From NCBI GenBank assembly GCA_020536535.1, contig JAHLWZ010000805.1, positions 1 through 64,000 of the forward strand: 64,000 nucleotides of DNA, in the 5' to 3' direction. This DNA comes from Pelomyxa schiedti. Lineage: Eukaryota > Protista > Evosea. The first letter of the stretch is position 1; the number at the start of each line of letters is the position of its first letter. The notes under the pieces were generated by a model that searched no databases, was not told where the DNA came from, and saw only the letters and a list, made by a program, of their open reading frames with translations. The translations under genes were made by a program, and so were the position numbers. Positions 1,184 to 38,800 of the stretch are shown in pieces.

Positions 1184-3031
1184 TCAGGGACTATCTTGTA
1201 CTTGGTGGACCAGGTAGCGTCCGACCTCGCACAAAATCCACGTGGGGAGTGTGACGAGGGGGCTGCCGGCGCCAGCCCTGGGGTGGTGTCCCATAAGTAG
1301 CGCCACGGCCTGCCCCTCCCACAGAATGTGCTGCTGCACCACGCCAAGGTGCCGCGCGCACCTCTGCACAGCCTCCTCCGCCTTGCTGATCTTTTCCTCG
1401 CCGCCGCTCGCCAGCGCCAGGACCCCAACCCTGGCAATGTCGCACGCCATCGATGCGTACTTGAGCGCAGTCCTGAGGTCCCTCCTGATGGTCCACCTTG
1501 TTGTGTTTTGGGGATCTGCTGGTGGTGTTGGTGCCGCAGTTGCTATTTGGGTTTGGGTGGATTCGCGGCTGCAATTGGTGGTGTTGGTGTTGGTGTTAAT
1601 GCTTGTTGTTGCTGTTGTGGAATCGGCCGAATTGGGTGTAGTTGTTGAATTGGAATTCAGGCTCAGATTGGAAAATAAATCATCCAGGGGTGTGGTCTGT
1701 GTGCTGGTATATGTGCTCACACTTTGGGCATTGATTCCATCATCATCCTCGACATCTTCTGGAATATCGATACCGGAAGCGTTGTCACATATGGAGTGAT
1801 CCAATTCTTTGCCATTTTCAACTCCGGCGAGATATATCTTGGAAAGTGCTTCTGCAGAATCTAGTGCTCCTATTTCTGCGGCATTGTGCAAGCACTGGAT
1901 GTATCTGAAAAAGTTTATTTTGACTTCGCGTCCACCAATTTCCATCCAAGCATTCAATGATCCTAATTGTGCCGCCTTCTTCAAGAGTGTATCAGCTTTG
2001 TGACGGTCTCTACCTGCGTGTGGGCTTCCATATCTGTAGTCAAAATACATGCACATCATGGATCCAACATCTCCATAATTCGCAGCTTTTTGTGCCAGCT
2101 CGAATGCCTTTGAAAGGTTCCTAGGTATGGCAGCGTTCCCCTCCTATTTTGGGCATTATGAAAGAGAGAAAAAAGAGTTAAGGTAAATACAGTATATGAA
2201 AGAGACAGGTTGTACATTGCCACAGTGTTTCCCAAATCGGCAGCGCTATGATAAAGGCTCAGAGCCTTAGCATGGTCAACTGGAGTGCCATCCCCATTGT
2301 CATAGCAAAAAGCAAGACTGAAGGAGGAATTTGTGTTTCCAAGATTGCTTGCTTGTTTGAAAAGCCGGAGAGCTTCAGAAAGGTCAGTTACAATTCCAGC
2401 GCGGGGACAACCATAATAAAAGTAAAGGGCTAGCTAAGGTTGATCAGGTGGAAACGCGTTGGGTGAGGCATACTTGATGAAGAGCTACTGGGTACCACTT
2501 TGATGTCTTGGACACCTTTCTGAAAAGGTTAAGAGCCACCTTATCATTAAACAAGAAAAACCTATGTACAGTTTCCATTGCTTTTCAAAAAATTGGAACG
2601 GCTTACTTCTCCCACAATGCGTGAACAGTGACACTACCAGGTTCACTTGTGCACAAAGGAAATGTAGTGTTGAAGAATAATGTCCCAGCATCTACAATAG
2701 GTTGTCGAATTTGAAAACTCTTCAGGCAACAATAAGACGACGGTCTCAAATCCTCCCGTTCTTGGCACTTTGGAAACATTATCACAAGTACCTAGCAGCG
2801 GGGGAAAAAAAAAAAAAAAATATTCAAAACAGTTGATTAGCAGGGCCCAGCAAAACAAAAGGTCTCTTTCAGTGATACTTTCTCAAGAAACATGACCGAC
2901 GGGGCAAACGAGCGGCAACTCTGCAGGGACGCGGCCAACTTGTCCGCGCACTTGTCAAGGCACCCGGCAGTGAACAGACCAATGGCGTCGATCAAGCTGC
3001 ATTCGGCGCTGCGCTGTTGCTCGTGAATCAT
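1184..3031 (-). CDS. Sel1-like repeat (SLR) protein, multi-exon
   Basis: SLR-type segments: GNAAIPRNLSKAFELAQKAANYG, GSPHAGRDRHKADTLLKKAAQLG, RRDLRTALKYASMA. Stop at 1184; start inferred at the ATG at 3031 (MIHEQQRS). Confidence 0.7.
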
Positions 3032-3260
3032 GTCGTAATTTGTCGAACAGATGAATGTGGTCTTCGAATGACAACAGGACCATTGCTGAGGTTGGCCTCC
3101 CAACAGCCAAGGTCCCCCTTACCTTGTAAACAAATTCTGTCAGAATTCCCCCCAGATTCCAGACAACTTTCCAAGGAAATCAATCAAAATCCCCGAAGCC
3201 ACGAAGCGTTCTTCGCATGGCACGCGACACGAAACGGCATAAAACAACAAAACGACTTTG

Positions 3261-4783
3261 ATGCAAACACACATGCTGCCTTCATCAGCCACCACGACTT
3301 GTTGTACCACCACTACGGCGCCAGTGCCGACTTATGGGACCACGCCGACAACGAGGACAGCACCGATGTCGACTTCCGCGGTTTGCCATGTCACACGTGC
3401 AATTGCTTACTCTCTCTGTTTTTGTCACAGGGTGCTGCATTCCAGGAAACCAGTTGGACGTGGGCTTCTTTACGATCCTTTGGAGTTATTGGGGGCAGGC
3501 GCCAGTTATGACGTCATTGCGGACCGGTGTGACTTGTCTCATTGTTGCGCAGCTTCACTTTGGAAAACATTCCACAAGGAGGGACAGGAGGCTGCAAAAC
3601 AAAAGCTAGCTCAGTCTTTTTCCAGGCATTCAAGGCCTAAGTGAGTACCGGGAAAGCTTGGATTTTTTCGGGGACTAATTAATCGACTTGGATTCTATTG
3701 CTAGTTCGAAAGATGCAAGAGTGTGTACATTTTTGCAGAGTTTCTATGGCAAAGCATTAGAAAGTCCCAAGGCACTCTCAGAGCTTGCAACAGTACACCT
3801 TGGCCAACCTATCACACCCAGAGATATCTCCAAGGTATTCCTTTGTGAAAGGTAGTAGTTGCAACTCCATAAAGTTGTTTAATAGGGGATCTCCATGCTT
3901 CAGCTATCAAGCAAAGAGACAAGTGCAACCCAAGCTGGTGGAGATACGAGTCAAAACGCTTGCCAGGAAGTCGACAATTTTTCACTGACACGTTTGGTCT
4001 GGAGGGCTGACCAACTTGTATTCACAGATAAAAAAGTTTTTAAAGCACGCGATATACCTGCTAGGTTGTTCTAATTCACTTTCTGAAAATGCTGAAGTAA
4101 ACCTAGAATGCCACCTTTCAGAATTCCCAATACTGACAAAACGATGGAATGGGTCAGCCCAAGCTTTCGTAAGGCACTTGCTACAAAATTCTGAACTTTG
4201 GAGCATAATATTTTCCTAGGTTGAGGTCATTGTTGCAATTGGAGTTGTGCAGCTTGGGCAATTGTTAGATGGGACTTGGGGTGACATTGGGGCACTCACA
4301 TTTTATCTTGCACAAGACAGGCTTTCAAAGGAAGAGAAAACCCGTTTTTACACTCAGATATTACCTCGCAAACTTTCTCCATATTCAGGTTACTTGTACT
4401 TCCTATCCACGATACAATTTGATTCATTGTCAACAGGGCCACGTAGTGTGGTAGTTTTGGACAATAAACCCCGTTACCGGCAGCAAATATCAGACATAAG
4501 TTCAGCAATTTCTGCTGCTGGATGCTTTTCAACATGGAGGTCTCCTCAATCCCCTGAACTTAATCTAGGGGAAATATTCTGGGATGCTGTCATGAATCGT
4601 CTTGCTCAACTACACCGGGAGCACCTCTTTGGTTCATCTTCCCACCTTCTACATGCATCACTCATTATTATAGGAGTGCACGGTTTTATTAAATGTGCAG
4701 ACCTTGATGACCTCATAGAGTGTTTAAAAACAACAAGGATATCACGAGATTCCTTACATTCTGTTGGTCTCAATTGGTTGTAG
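3261..4783 (+). CDS. Hypothetical protein, multi-exon, divergent from the Sel1 gene
   Basis: Chain of open frames separated by short GT-AG introns, ending ...LHSVGLNWL* at 4783. No recognisable domain. Confidence 0.5.
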
Positions 4784-29400: not shown

Positions 29401-30162
29401 ATCACCTTCGCCTTCTGCCTCGGTTCCTCCTTCACCGGATTCATCAAGCACCACTCCAACTTTACTCCGAATTACCGCGGGCGCCTTAGCATCACATGCA
29501 CACAATATGCACAGTGGAGAAAATACTCCTCCCAGAAAAAAGAGTGTGTCTTCCCAACCCTGGAAAAGCTCAGGTTGACTTGTAAACGTAGAGGTGGGCT
29601 TTGTATGCTTCTTGGAAGAAACAGTTGCCCCACAGGTTGAACACATCTCTCACAGCAGACAGGCAGCAGTTATTAAAAACACAGCAACAACAGGTTTTCC
29701 ACAATTCATCTATCTCCACAAAAGTAGACACTACCACATACACTACATCGTACAGCACAACAACCCAACATATCTGTCATCTCAGTGAACAAAACAAAAC
29801 CAGATACAACAACACCATCAGTAACAGACCTCTCGCGAGAAATACCATGGCAGATTCTTCACGAAACACCCAAGTCAGACATGTATGTCATAAACAAACA
29901 ACCTTTCCTCTCACCCACAAATCACAATAGTAGCAACAAGTATTCTGTTGTACCAAGTAGTGAACTTCTGCCTGACGGAAACCCCAAAGAGGTTTTCTAC
30001 TTTGGAATCATAGACATTCTACAGCGGTACGATGGGACCAAGAAGTTTGCTTCTTTGGTGAAATCATTGAGACACGCCAAAGGAGGCCTTTCTACTGTGG
30101 ACCCGACTTTCTACTGTGAACGATTTTTGTCTATGGTCAATAAAATAGTAACAAATGAGTGA
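26430..30162 (+). CDS. Phosphatidylinositol-phosphate kinase (PIPK family) with a long disordered N-terminus
   Basis: VKDYAPIVFEKLR, STGKSDS..FSRDGKFVMKT, LLPRFFGLHRI, YDLK|GS, LKDLDF, LMDYSLLIG, YFGIIDILQRY, STVDPTFYCERF. Confidence 0.92.
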
Positions 30163-30371
30163 AACAAAAAGACTCACGGAATTTCTTTAAAAAATAAGTC
30201 AACAACTCACTTTGCTTTGCGTCCAACAAGACGATACAGAGAATTAAGAGAATCCTTTCGTACGATAGGTTCGCAGTTCTGCAGGGTACACCCCTTCATC
30301 CACAGAGTTCTCACACAATATCTCTCCCCGAGCAAGACTCTCCGGTCAGGCCCCAATAATAGGTGAAAACA

Positions 30372-30386
30372 TTTGAACTTCCCGCC
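30372..30386 (-). promoter_or_regulatory. CDE/CHR (E2F + LIN54-type) tandem-like element
   Basis: Minus strand reads GGCGG-GAAG-TTCAAA, i.e. an E2F-like GGCGGGAA plus a TTYRAA hexamer at 4-nt spacing, about 80 nt upstream of the predicted non-coding transcript. Confidence 0.35.
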
Positions 30387-30459
30387 CAGAATATTCCGTA
30401 AAAATGATTTGGGCTCTTTTAAACTCGGGATCTTCTTTTTTAAAAATTAACAAAGCAGT

Positions 30460-31800
30460 AAAGTACATGTGTGCGGCGGTGTGTGGGTGCGCGGCAAGCC
30501 CATGAGGTGGCAGCACGCACTAGGAGAGATCTCACGTATTTCCTCTTGTTTTTTTTTTATCCTTTGTCTCGTGGCTTTTCTTTCTCTCGCTTGTCCTGTC
30601 GTGTCGTCTCGTGTCGTGTTTGGTGGTTTTTTTCCTTGCTGTTTTGGGTTTTTTTTTTCCCCTACAGGCTCCTTTTTGTGCGCGAGATACGACGCTCTGG
30701 TGGGAGTGGAGGAGGCTGGTGTTGGGGCGGCTGGGGGTTTGGTGTGTTGGTTTTGCTGGACTCTCGTGACACGAGCGGGCTCTGACTCTCCCAAGTTTGT
30801 TTTGGGTTATTATAGTTATTATAATATTATACTGTGGGTTATAGGTTTCGTTTCTACAGTATTACCTTCTATTCTTTTTTGTTTTTTTTCGTGCAGATAC
30901 AGGTGCATTTCATTGAGATGCTGAGCGCCGCATTCTGCTGTTGCAGCTGGAAGAAGAGGGGGGGGGGGATCAACATATATCAATACCGGACGTGACGACA
31001 TTCAGTCAGTCCTAATCGGGTTTGTTGACGGCATTCAGTCTCGACCCAGATTGCCCCAGCCCACCAGTGACGACATTCAGTCAGGGTTGGGCTGGGAATC
31101 ATTTGGCTGGTGGTGACGACATTTTGTCAAACCAGTTCAGTCTTCCGTGTTTCCGTGACGACATTTTGTCAGGACCGGATTACTGCCTCGAATCCCAGAA
31201 CGTGTCACGACATTTGTGATGCTCTGGATTCAACTCCAGTCCAGTCAATAAAAGTTTGACGACATTTTGTCACGCTGGATTGGAATTCATTCCCCCTCCC
31301 CTCTCACTTGACTCCCGCTGACTTGGCTGACCTGCTTTGGCTGACTTGCTTTTCATTTCGTAAGAACACTCCCACTCCTCTACAATACAGGCACAGGTTG
31401 AAACAGGAGCAGCAGCAGCCGGCGCAGCAGCAGAGGCAGGAGGAACACTCTGGGGGGTCTCTAACCCCCAAGTAAGACCCCATTCCCAATTAATTTCGAC
31501 TCTTCTGACTTCCCTTCACATACACACTCTCCAGTGAACTTGAGTACCCCGACGGAACGAACACTCAGGTGAATTCCACTCTTCCGCCAATAAACAACAA
31601 CTTACTTTTCCCCCAGAGAACCCAGAGAGGCTGATGACAACAACTGCGGCTTTTCGCGGCTTCTTGAGGCTCTTTACGTTTCGCGATGGTCTCTCTTGGG
31701 GTCTCTTACGCTCTTTCAAGTGCACCCTCACCCTCACCCTCGCCCACACCCAGTCTGTTGTCTTTCCCCGTGCTAAATAAAACCCTTTTTTTCTTGTTAC
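30460..31800 (+). ncRNA. Candidate spliced long non-coding RNA carrying a 7-hairpin array
   Basis: Five + strand GT-AG introns with pyrimidine-rich 3' ends (30536-30667, 30795-30896, 31360-31390/96, 31472-31534, 31569-31616); AATAAA at 31776; no ATG-initiated spliced ORF longer than ~62 aa. Ends approximate. Confidence 0.55.
30988..31284 (+). repeat. Array of seven stem-loops with a conserved GACAUU(CA/UU/U) loop
   Basis: Cores TGAC-GACATT(CA|TT)-GTCA at 30993, 31026 (variant), 31068, 31114, 31156 and 31257, plus TCAC-GACATTT-GTGA at 31205. Each has its own complementary outer arms. Confidence 0.88.
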
Positions 31801-32067
31801 ACATCTCTTTTCTCGATTCCCACTACTTTATTATCTTCACCGCCGAGATAGCCGCCACTATCCACCGATAGCTTGTCAGCGGACACGGGCTCGAACTCGT
31901 GTATTTGTCAGGGGACATTTCCCGAAAGACCTCAACAGTAACAAGTCGTTGTCAACAAGCATGCTTCTTTTGTGTTCAAGCAGTTCCTACACACAACAAT
32001 CATGGCAGTGGGTGGCCAGTCAGTGTGTGTGACCCCAAGTTCTTGTTGAGTCAGGCAAAGGAATAGC

Positions 32068-33021
32068 TCAGACAGAGCAGGGCCATTCCTTTTCAGTGAT
32101 GCATCCTCTTGTGGTGGTGTGTGCTGTTGCCTGTGTGGTGATTGTTATTGGGACTGCGGCTTCGGTTGGGCTTGGGCTGCTGGCTGTTGTTATCATGCCC
32201 GCTTTTGGTGTTGTAGCAGTGTTTGGGACCGCGGCTCCTGATGTTGTGGTAGTGAATACTGTTGGCACTGCCGCGAAACTGTGATGGTGATGATTGGGGC
32301 TCGGACTGAGGCTTTGGGTGTATGTTGTGATTGTGGTTGTAATCAGAGACATCATTGCGGTCACGGTAATCATCATCGTCATAATAATGGTAGCGGCGGG
32401 GATAATGGTCCCGGCGTGGGCTCCTGCTGTTACTGCGGTTGTGGGGTCAGTGTCATGTTGTAATGGTGGCTGGGACTGTGGAGGTGTGGTGGGAATGGTG
32501 CAAGAAGCGGTGGTGGTGAAGCATAACAAGAAGAGGGTTGAGGCTGTGGGGGTGCAAGAAGAAGAATGTTGGACTTGATAAGCTGTTGCACCATGTTGGG
32601 AATTGTGTCCGTTCTGATTGTCATTGTGCCGCCGCAGGGGTATTCGTAGCCCTCCGCCAACGAAGAGTACTTGGTTATTCTCCGAACCCTGGCAGTGGAT
32701 TAGATCCGCTTAAATTATCTGCCATTCTCTTCTCCCCATACCTTGTGTGTACTACAGCTGAGCTCAACGGGACCTTGCTGGATACCACGAACGGGAAATG
32801 AGAGGGGTCGTCCAAGTTGCACCTGATGAGAAATACTGCTCCCTCTCCTCCTCTGGCAGAAGAGGTGGAGTGTTTTGCATACTAGTGGTTGCCGCACTTG
32901 GTGGCGCAGCGCAAGCCATTTCCTTGACGCCCTCAATGCTGTCATAGTAGGCGAGAGATTCGTTCCTCAACGCGGTTTCGAAACACCCCTCCTTGTGGCG
33001 GGAGACCGTTGCTGCCTCCAT
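32068..33021 (-). pseudogene. Probable decayed gene remnant (fragmented frames, Thr/His/Pro-rich tail)
   Basis: CpG-rich 5' part at 32900-33020 (MEAATVSRHK...), then overlapping short minus-strand ORFs in changing frames without intron signals. Confidence 0.3.
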
Positions 33022-35898: not shown

Positions 35899-38800
35899 AT
35901 GTCGACAGCGTACGACTGTAACGAATGGGACAACAAAGGCAGTACAGCAACGGACGTCGCATCTACTTCCATTTCGTCGCTGTGCGGCGGCGATCGCGAC
36001 GCCGCCCCCCGTGCCGTTGCCGAAGACACGGCGAGAGATCTCGCTGCCGACGCCCTTGAAGCGGAGATAAAGCGGTGCTGCGGTGCGGAGAGCACGACGG
36101 CGATCGCGAGCTACGGCCTGTGCGTAGCGTCGCCGACGGGGAAGCACGTAGCCGCTGTGGTTGAAGGCTCGAAGGTTTGCTCATATTGTGGTTTGGTGAT
36201 TGACGACTGTCAACTCACCAGTACCTGCGAGTTGGTCATGCACCAAGGTGTGCTGTGGCGCGTCATTTTATCATACAATAATAAAGAGGTGGACGTGGAC
36301 AGCGTGCTGACTTCTCCCCCCCCCCCCATTCTAGGGAAAGCTGTGCCTACTGGGCACTTGGTTGATAGCAGAGGGGCCGTGTACCGTCAGCATAATAAAA
36401 TACATAGTGAAGCACAAAATGCCTTACGCAATGAGGTATCGAAATTTCCGATTCCCTCACTTAAATTCTTAATGGAAATGGTTCAGGAAGTTTTGAGGAA
36501 AATAGTGGAATCTGTAACAACAGACTTCCATCTTCCAACTAAGCTTGTTTCTGAGATATTGGCAAAAGCACGGCTACTTAAAGACCGTATTTAAGTACAT
36601 ACGAGAAGCCATTTCTAAATTGTGGCAGGTAATGTTTGGCGCAATGGCGAGGCTGGAAAAGAAATAGTGGCGGCCCTTATCTACATATTCGGAAGGCAAA
36701 AAAAAGATGGGTTCCAAATGTTTACTGTCAATCAAGTTGCTGTACGCCAAATCAGTTCAGCCAATACACTACTTATGTTAAAACAGGTAAGAACCGGCCT
36801 TTCTCCAGATGCCATTGGCAAGGCTTACCGAAGCTGTGTGCTTGAACTAGACATGGTTGTCCCGCCACTTGATCTCCGAGCTCTACTTTCGCGGTGTGTA
36901 AAGGAAGTCAAGCCTGATTACCGTGCGAGTAAATCAACACCTGAAAAAACCGTCAATAAGGTTTTTCACCAGCACTTTCCCACTTTCAATCTCAAAATGG
37001 AAAAGGCAATGGCGTTGATTGAGTTCCTTCGACACTACGAGTTAATGAATGATGTGAAACCGCCTGTACTTGCTGCAGCTGCTTTGCACCTTGTGCTAGA
37101 AGCAGAAGACGTTGCGTACATTCAGGGTAGTGAGGCCCCTAGTGCAGAGAGCCAGCATCAAATTAATGCAGACCCTCAGCACCAATACAATGCTGATCCC
37201 CAGCATCAAAGCAAAACTGATCGTCAACCAAACAAGGAGATCCAGCCCAGACAGCCAATTAGTCCTTTCATTTGTCAGGCGTTTTTGGTTACACCAGGGC
37301 CAGTAGAGAAACAGTGTGTTTATTTGCACCTTTAATTATCTAACAAGCCCAAGGGTGCGTGACATTCTAAGAATTCTACTTGATGCTGCTCAGAAGGCTC
37401 CATTTGCCTCTCATTGGTCTTTAAAAGATGCCCGCTCAAGTTTGCCTTACCTCCTTGAAGTAAGTGCCTCACTCCTAAGGCCCGATTTTAATAAGTTGAG
37501 TAGAATCTTGGGTTAATACAGCTGATCTGTGATCACGCTCTGAGTTCACAGAGTTTTCATATTGCATCACAAGAATGCAGTGAGAGTCAAAATACATTGC
37601 CTCCCGCCAGTCTACCAGTTCAAGAATCAACTGCGAACTCTGCTTCATCAAATTTCGAGCAGGTACAATCGAAATCTGAAGTGGAGGAAAAAGAGGTCTT
37701 CTGCAATAGCTTGCAACCTGGAGTGGAGTCCCTTCAATCAACCATCCTTAAACCCGTGCCGTACTTCGTCTATCAACCTGAAAGAGCCAGTTTACCAACC
37801 AAGTCTGTGTTCAAGAAAGATAGAAGAAGATCGATGAGGAAATTAACAGGCCGTACCGGCGGGAAGGAGAGCGACTACCAGATTAACTATACCACCGTGG
37901 CAGAGACCATACCGCCACCTCCAGTAGTGGAGAGCAGTTCCACCACTCTCTCCCTTCCTGACAATCAAGTGTCCGCGACTCAAACACCTCAACACTTTAA
38001 TTCCTTCCAAAGCATAATCCCAACAATACAGAGCAAGTCACAGAAATCTACCCCTGCTGATTCTTCATTATTTCCCTCTCTCTCTGATTCAGTCTCGAGC
38101 CCATCAGGGTCCTCCCAGTCAGGCCCAGCCACACCTTCATCTTTCATGAGCACACCCTCATTACCTCCATGTACTCCATCCGATTCTATTTATTCACCTC
38201 TGGCAAAGTCAATAGCAGTAAGCCCCTCATTGGACACCACATATCCAATCACACCATCATCGGCATCGCTGATCACTCCTGCTGCATCCCCCATGACACC
38301 TTCGGTGCAATTCCTGTCAGGAAACCCGTTCGATCCCTCATTAAGCCTGTTGGCACCAGTCCAAAGGCAACTTCTTGTGGCACCTCACTTTGAAGGAACT
38401 GCCCAGCTACCAAGATCATTTATCAAGCAACAAAAAGCTACAGCCCGTCTTGCATATAAAATCGAGCAGGCAGCTAAACGCATTGAGATAGCTAACAGGC
38501 CCTCCGCTACTTTGTCCATGAAAAGCCTGCAACCACAAGGATTTGAAGCGCTTGATGAGATGCCTTCTCAGATCCCCGACCTCAGTGAGGAGGAAGCCGA
38601 CCTGTTCTGCAACATAGATAACGAGGACGTAGCAATAGAGACACTATTACACTGGGGCTGCCCTCCTGAGAAGATTCTATGTGGACACCTTGAATCACTA
38701 CTGGCCGAACAGCGTGATCACGCCGGCGGCTACTCCTCTGACGACGAGGAAGTGAGCGCTTGTGTTAAGCAAGTGGAGGGACATGCCGGAGTCTGCCAAC

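Follow-up and report, generated by a model that had tools for sequence, protein, structure and literature searches.

To our knowledge, hairpin arrays that act as protein sponges are a core regulatory device of bacteria, whereas few dedicated cases are known from eukaryotes, and most of these belong to animals or viruses. Single hairpins of related design include the IRE, with a C bulge, a 5-bp upper stem and a CAGUGN loop, and the MS2/PP7 hairpins, with an A bulge and an ANYA loop. The Xist A-repeat and the roX tandem stem-loops combine a spliced Pol II lncRNA with a repeated hairpin module that serves as a multivalent platform, and EBER1 of EBV has a 5′-3′ closing stem. The bacterial CsrB, CsrC and RsmZ are untranslated RNAs with several hairpins, and the titration of one protein, in many copies, has been proposed as their function (PMC4005645, PMC5027483). 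Hairpins hp1-6 of the MAT2A 3′-UTR are bound by METTL16 (PMC10578476), and several stem-loops of EBER1 bind copies of eL22 (PMC2668802).

The locus described here belongs to the single-cell assembly of the anaerobic amoeba Pelomyxa schiedti, which comprises 52.4 Mb in 5337 scaffolds, with about 7.4 introns per gene and 98.4% GT-AG introns (PMC8887013). By the window we mean the whole 64,000-nt stretch that was analysed (C805 among the contigs). The first-pass annotation had reported seven tandem RNA hairpins in it; we located their cores at 30993, 31026, 31068, 31114, 31156, 31205 and 31257, and the spacings given earlier (33, 42, 46, 42, 49 and 52 nt) were all reproduced. Hairpin 1 (30988-31012; all seven are on the + strand) has a bulged G, a UGAC/GUCA upper stem and the loop GACAUUCA, and hairpin 2 (31014-31052) has the loop GGCAUUCA. 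Hairpins 3 (31055-31096), 4 (31105-31137) and 5 (31144-31179) were placed by the fold. The upper stem of hairpin 6 (31190-31231) is exchanged for UCAC/GUGA, a swap already pointed out in the first reading and present in four paralogous copies and an allele. In hairpin 7 (31235-31284), an AAUAAA hexamer described as bulged does lie in an internal loop (31247-31252), but reads AAUAUA in the copy on C794; it is probably not a working poly(A) signal. The loops of the window follow the consensus GACAUUYW, are 8 nt long and are closed by C-G. GACAUU had been called invariant and is in fact near-invariant, with GGCAUU in unit 2 of the window and GACAAU in unit 2 of C1938. In the predicted fold, the loops of units 4-6 can zip to a 4-nt tip (3-nt in unit 6) with p of about 0.9, and the apex of unit 7 is ambiguous (p 0.32). 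The upper stem keeps its sequence from unit to unit and the lower stems do not, a pattern that suggests contacts in addition to base pairing.

The array folded better than shuffled controls, as had been expected of it. On the + strand, its MFE was -121.9 kcal/mol (z -6.15) and 0 of 100 shuffles were as good; the fold of the - strand was weaker (z -3.2). Because repeated palindromic cores inflate fold scores, we also ran core-fixed shuffles, in which the seven 16-nt cores were kept and the linkers alone were shuffled, and z was still -4.8. A lower stem of at least 4 bp formed in 7 of 7 units, against a mean of 2.2 and a maximum of 5 in 200 core-fixed shuffles. The proposed covariation was assessed on 16 distinct units from three copies, with a model consisting of a lower stem, one bulged base, UGAC/GUCA and an 8-nt loop. 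The units do covary, with 81% of cells paired and 22 double changes, a value reached by 0 of 500 shuffles, in a set drawn from paralogs because a single species was at hand, and in a test that kinship among units inflates. The pairing score of the 16 units peaked at register 0, above every slid register.

The G-U wobble pairs had been taken both to fix the strand and to favour RNA over DNA. The + centroid contains 12 G-U pairs and the - centroid 4, which upholds the choice of strand, but folding as ssDNA was likewise significant and also better on + (z -4.0 vs -2.65), so that RNA and DNA are not separated by this argument. Significant, +-preferring ssDNA folding would suit a DNA-level element, in which ssDNA hairpins or a repeated TGAC-N8-GTCA protein site serve as an array for origin, recombination or enhancer function, with transcription, if any, a side effect; TGACG is, moreover, a bZIP-type half-site. 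We consider this improbable, as double-stranded sites need neither unique lower stems nor a closing stem, and promoter-like and poly(A)-like signals bound the unit on the better-folding strand.

The hairpins do occupy 30988-31284 as first annotated, but the feature continues outward to a closing stem that the annotation did not contain. This inverted repeat, 30944-30970 x 31289-31320, encloses all the hairpins. Its 5′ arm (30944-30970, +), predicted from pairing, is G/A-rich with a G-tract; the C/U-rich 3′ arm (31289-31320, +) opens a 110-nt AG-free zone with four YUGAC repeats to about 31346. The pair probability of the closing stem was about 0.98 in the window, 0.99 in C794 and about 1.0 in C1938, and an equivalent stem forms in the latter two despite differing G and C tracts. 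In C1938, both arms have additional bases, and these pair with each other. Cognate arm duplexes outdid shuffled arms (fraction 0, 0.015, 0.001), and cognate arms were the best partners in the window and C1938, but not in C794. The whole 377-nt domain gave a z of -8.9 on + and -6.2 on -. Given so strong a pairing of the closing stem, the object is a closed rosette and not a loose string of hairpins.

A long closing stem is also a possible substrate for RNase III/Dicer, and the genome contains four Piwi/Argonaute and two RNase III loci. A small-RNA precursor, from which cuts in the closing stem or the hairpins free short guides, nevertheless appears quite unlikely. The hairpins are 25-50 nt long, their stems are short and bulged, and there is no Rfam miRNA match. 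While miRNA/siRNA clusters have long stems, conserved arms and variable loops, the pattern here is reversed, with conserved tips and variable arms.

The rosette is located within an ORF-less unit of ~1.4 kb (about 30345-31810), flanked by a PIP5K gene (+) that ends at 30162 and a convergent unannotated gene (-) that ends near 32070. Homology between copies of the unit opens at promoter-like blocks and stops just past AATAAA and a T-rich tract. The following parts are all on the + strand. The putative Pol II promoter (30346-30450) has a CCAAT-like block, TTGAACTTCCCGC and a T/A tract; these upstream blocks are common to C794, C142, C596 and, in part, C313 and C612, and the outer flank diverges. 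A cell-cycle (E2F/CHR-like) promoter was rejected because the other four occurrences of the motif lie away from gene starts. Putative exon 1 (30456-30535) extends from a CAGT start-like motif to the donor CAC/GTATT, whose context is kept in 6 copies; its identity to C794 is 64%, with non-triplet indels. Putative intron 1 (30536-30667; GT, poly-T, CAG) keeps its ends despite a 39-nt internal deletion in C794. Putative exon 2 (30668-30794) contains 11-nt and 1-2-nt indels and a small UGAC-containing hairpin at 30763-30775. Two further putative introns, 30795-30896 and 30903-30946 (44 nt), would enclose a 6-nt microexon, ATACAG (30897-30902), judging from sequence and conservation. An adaptin-like gene of the same genome, the one gene inspected by eye, has introns of 40-51 nt. 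Downstream of the rosette, a GTAAGA donor and a CAG acceptor (31360-31390), 94% identical in three paralogs, may delimit a short intron or mark the 3′ end of a long rosette-bearing one. The family-wide 3′ block (31452-31616) comprises a G6/C5 hairpin, a donor at 31472, CTGAC at 31505, AG/GT at 31567-31570 and a putative 48-nt intron at 31569-31616; it was found at at least 8 loci, some with other arrays or none. The putative last exon (31617-31800) carries repeated GGYUCUU, AATAAA at 31776-31781 and the T-rich end where homology stops. The GGYUCUU repeats, five or so at 31640-31720, are kept family-wide and are possible single-stranded protein sites. We also observed that adjacent AG/GT (or AG/GC) at 30667-30669 and 31567-31570 is kept across paralogs; these may be zero-length exons (recursive splicing), and 3-8-nt microexon candidates stand beside them.

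Across the unit, GT and YAG sites are kept while the intervening sequence takes indels. AATAAA is confined to +, where five of the six copies tested have it, and there are 17 acceptor-like sites on + against 6 on -. GTRAG words are commoner on - (31 vs 13), but these equal branch-like CTYAC on +. Conserved GT-AG sites, a one-strand AATAAA and no ORF are the sequence features of a spliced, polyadenylated Pol II lncRNA, from which we infer a transcript. A protein-coding or microexon gene was rejected, since the copies have no start or frame in common, every putative exon takes non-triplet indels and no product was found: ten exact look-ups of a protein came back blank, and phmmer gave one weak match (E 6e-4, 27% identity). 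Elsewhere in the window, 35899-37335 (+) holds two long unannotated frames with no Pfam match at 1e-3; by eye, the first has a Cys-x2-Cys zinc-ribbon-like stretch and the second is cyclin/TFIIB-like.

Three routes by which the rosette would be carried in RNA can be read from the sequence. For its place in a spliced RNA, within a 413-nt exon between the 44-nt intron (30903-30946) and the donor at 31360, we put the chances at about even. An excised or retained intron is a possible though less probable carrier. Four copies have, 3′ of the array, an AG-free zone of 110-152 nt with repeated YUGAC, a length reached by only 8 of the window's 4,283 AG gaps. Such a zone fits the 3′ end of one long intron, which the closing stem would shorten; the pyrimidine tract is, however, accounted for by the closing stem itself, so the intronic reading stays only one option. 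Back-splicing is possible as well, because the arms of the closing stem juxtapose the acceptor at 30946 and the donor at 31360, but a back-spliced circle seems unlikely. Circular RNAs have been reported from Entamoeba (PMC9607107).

In the genome searched (52,367,397 bases in 5,337 contigs), we found about four full copies and decayed relatives, about ten loci overall. Besides the window, the unit occurs on C794, on C142 and C1938 (one locus, split by a gap), on C498 and as an allele on C3175 and C4115. Four DNA-type contig runs from one sample were used, with contigs that span introns and intergenic DNA; in the two deepest, array depth was about 4-6 times that of the flank, which agrees with four or five copies. 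The array was conserved more strongly than the rest of the unit. Between copies, its identity was 95-96%, against 79-94% for the remainder of its exon, 64-84% for exons 1, 2, 4 and 6, and 80-94% for the putative introns, several of which are themselves well conserved at 84-94%; the high identity of the array could partly reflect gene conversion. Between-copy substitutions shun paired positions (8/24, p 0.002; 8/19, p 0.035, without indel-adjacent sites). Three of the paired-site substitutions exchange G-C and G-U, and the indels sit in linkers or loops.

Some copies are decayed, and in one haplotype of the window copy (C4115, run X4) a 357-nt deletion at a short microhomology (31575-31931) has removed AATAAA together with the last exon. 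Both observations would be at home in a neutral reading, in which a duplicated repeat is decaying and its hairpins arose incidentally, through gene conversion and duplication. To this reading we assign a low probability: in the absence of selection, one would not expect seven lower stems unlike one another, changes that compensate, or a closing stem that matches. The seven-hairpin element is real, apparently selected and undescribed.

The wider family shares modules more than arrays. The 3′ block is also present at C940, C313, C498:53555, C253 and C612; C596 has the 5′ block. C612 and C498b have lost their array, C498b being 5′-truncated, and C595 is an 80-nt remnant. On C940 (-), a 53-nt unit whose hairpin has a GUGUCA loop is repeated three times in tandem, about 300 nt upstream of the 3′ block; this array is unrelated to that of the window, and the gene has only the 3′ exons in common with the family. 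The distant paralog on C313 keeps the promoter, exon 1 and the 3′ exons but has a different array (about 3030-3640). Its ten near-identical units contain two long hairpin types, one with CA-rich and the other with CUACAU/CUCCAU loops, joined by UGAC-GG(G)CCC..UGUC connectors, and can refold into a hairpin of the window type. The unit model matched one connector (E 0.003), in which a lower stem and a bulged G are followed by UGAC/GUC around a longer loop. The fold that C313 favours is a different one, with the UGAC/GUC helix closing the foot of the long hairpins, a permuted register. Bulge, UGAC/GUC and GRC are present ten times in C313, and CAU is lacking in the connectors. As these three features alone are shared with C313, they are the oldest common element, and GACAUU, put forward in the first-pass annotation as the core conserved feature, turns out to be specific to the subfamily.

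The distribution of CAU also bears on a reading of the loops as antisense. CAU is central in 7 of 7 window loops, and GACAUUUU is the reverse complement of the start-codon context AAAAUGUC, so the loops might pair with mRNA starts, much as S. aureus RNAIII loops pair with ribosome-binding sites, or mimic a CAU anticodon. We regard this as very improbable. CAU is gone in unit 2 of C1938 as well as lacking in the C313 connectors, loop pairing needs no sequence conservation of the upper stem, the genome holds no long complementary target, and 8-nt loops without U33 and purine 37 do not resemble an anticodon.

Membership of a high-copy transposon end, like a match to a known Rfam family, had been named among the findings that would undo the interpretation. 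At about ten loci, with no TIR, target-site duplication (TSD) or A-tail, this is not what we observed. A SINE or other non-autonomous retroelement was rejected on copy number and on the missing target-site duplication and A-tail, and a MITE or DNA transposon on the missing terminal inverted repeats and TSD. A TMEM185-like gene piece (PF10269), 93% identical, is duplicated by two family copies on C498, and shorter flank pieces occur at C940 and C612. Together with the absence of TIR, TSD and A-tail, this shared neighbour indicates that the family most likely spread by DNA duplication. A ~100-nt MITE-like inverted repeat in the 3′ flank is common to the C498 and C253 loci.

We must also consider a selfish or satellite element, in which the hairpins are packaging or replication signals for an RNA-virus coat or a retroelement Gag and the unit is a non-autonomous passenger. 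The packaging sites of MS2/PP7 and yeast L-A have the same design of bulge, short helix and fixed loop, and the copies are dispersed, C498b truncated at its 5′ end and some others decayed. The low number of loci without transposon hallmarks, the intron-like segments in all copies and the TMEM185-like piece beside several of them, as in segmental duplication, make this reading unlikely, and neither the assembly nor the viral contigs contain an autonomous partner that bears the hairpins.

Searches for relatives elsewhere left the loop as unfamiliar as it was at first sight. With Rfam 15 at the gathering threshold, the window gave 0 matches, and the unit and C313 gave chance matches only (E above 1); no tRNA or tmRNA was detected. 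A telomerase template, hammerhead, K-turn/box C/D, H/ACA and Sm-site were rejected on inspection of the sequence. For a box C/D or H/ACA snoRNA cluster, a GUGACGA resembles box C but is Watson-Crick paired to GUCA, and there are no ACA/AGA tails and no Rfam match. A two-unit pattern scan found 0 matches in viral contigs and 0 in prokaryotic genomes. Five metagenome matches were unrelated and fell in a 27-nt minisatellite, in a tract of GAC repeats, in a coding stretch and in a REP-like repeat by a GIY-YIG nuclease gene. On metagenome contig Ga0137829_12716708 (1-120), the junction of bacterial REP-like palindromes contains the exact 16-nt core twice; the contig is otherwise dissimilar, and we take the match as chance. 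Literature searches returned no structured lncRNA family from Archamoebae and no description of the element.

Within the genome, a covariance-model scan recovered 28 array units and one decayed fragment, with nothing else significant among the best 150 candidates. Single pattern matches on C423, C570, C636 and C836 were no more than in a reversed-pattern control and were rejected. C636 and C836 carry duplicates of one gene start, identical to each other, in which a B-box-like zinc finger is encoded and the core is matched exactly once, a count within chance. Across the genome, the loop core showed no enrichment (228 occurrences vs 293 in the control, a CpG-confounded comparison). Dispersed single hairpins, which would be the natural sites of a sponged protein, were not found in these genome scans. 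Their absence is the main gap for a decoy, and natural sites may be too degenerate for scans.

The best reading, which we hold with roughly balanced confidence, is a Pol II lncRNA family that acts as a multivalent protein decoy or scaffold. From the multivalent protein-binding RNA first proposed, it retains the structure, the strand and the conserved tip on variable stems, but gives up GACAUU as the deep element and the G-U argument for RNA. Against it stand, besides the missing single hairpins, the haplotype that lacks the last exon, the relatives whose array is lost or replaced by an unrelated one, and the good conservation of several putative introns. In our model, the + transcript of a low-copy Pol II-type non-coding gene family would fold its core into a rosette of one closing stem and seven radiating hairpins. 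Each hairpin would end in a cap formed by a bulged base, the 4-bp UGAC/GUCA helix and a loop that starts with GRC, and the individual sequence of each stem would stop the units from mispairing with one another. Each cap may provide one site for the same RNA-binding protein. Up to seven protein copies could then assemble on one RNA, with titration (decoy) or clustering (scaffold) as the outcome.

More tentatively, the family might constitute a eukaryotic CsrB-like system, a proposal that we consider doubtful. It would consist of non-coding genes with common promoter, splice and 3′ modules and exchangeable, fast-evolving cassettes, whose rosettes titrate a specific protein by an undescribed bulge-helix-loop code. 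The cassettes would be the seven GACAUU caps in the window, the ten permuted UGAC/GUC units in C313 and a third unit in C940, and the rosette might come free in the form of a stable intron or of a circle.

Should the rosette be expressed, its cap could lead to a new pair of RNA motif and cognate protein. With one cap repeated on seven unlike stems, the array is a natural counterpart of the non-repetitive aptamer arrays that are engineered for RNA imaging. Such RNAs are built up by unit duplication and register slippage, as is seen from the paralogs whose arrays are swapped or permuted.

Compared with the known systems, the rosette shares bulge, short upper helix and fixed loop with the IRE and MS2/PP7, but its bulge is G or U, its helix 4 bp and its loop 8 nt, which conforms to neither. 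The genome has five aconitase-family loci, which leaves room for a non-canonical IRE-type ligand. EBER1 is likewise a multibranch RNA with several stem-loops for copies of one protein, as we propose for the rosette, but it is viral and transcribed by Pol III. The eL22 consensus (a G-C closing pair and a 5-7-nt loop ending in U) differs from the C-G-closed 8-nt loops of the rosette, and is fitted loosely, with low information, by one C313 hairpin type (CUACAU/CUCCAU loops). The MAT2A 3′-UTR is a eukaryotic hairpin cluster with one conserved loop motif for one protein, the counterpart of which is putative for the rosette. Its loop is UACAGARAA, and the rosette host has no reading frame and hence is not a cis-acting mRNA UTR. 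With Xist and roX, the rosette has in common a repeated hairpin module in a (putative) spliced Pol II lncRNA; it has no sequence relation to them and no Rfam match, and belongs to a dispersed protist multigene family with exchangeable arrays. CsrB and RsmZ present GGA (ANGGAX) loops in place of GACAUUYW, and CsrA (PF02599) has no match in the P. schiedti draft genome. The rosette unit further differs from them in its splice-like and poly(A)-like signals, in a closing stem instead of a terminator and in that no target sites were found. The resemblance lies in the architecture: in CsrB/RsmZ as in the rosette, one motif recurs across unlike stems, in many hairpins of an untranslated unit. Judged by its sequence, the element itself is undescribed, and the kind to which it would belong, the multivalent hairpin RNA, is already known.
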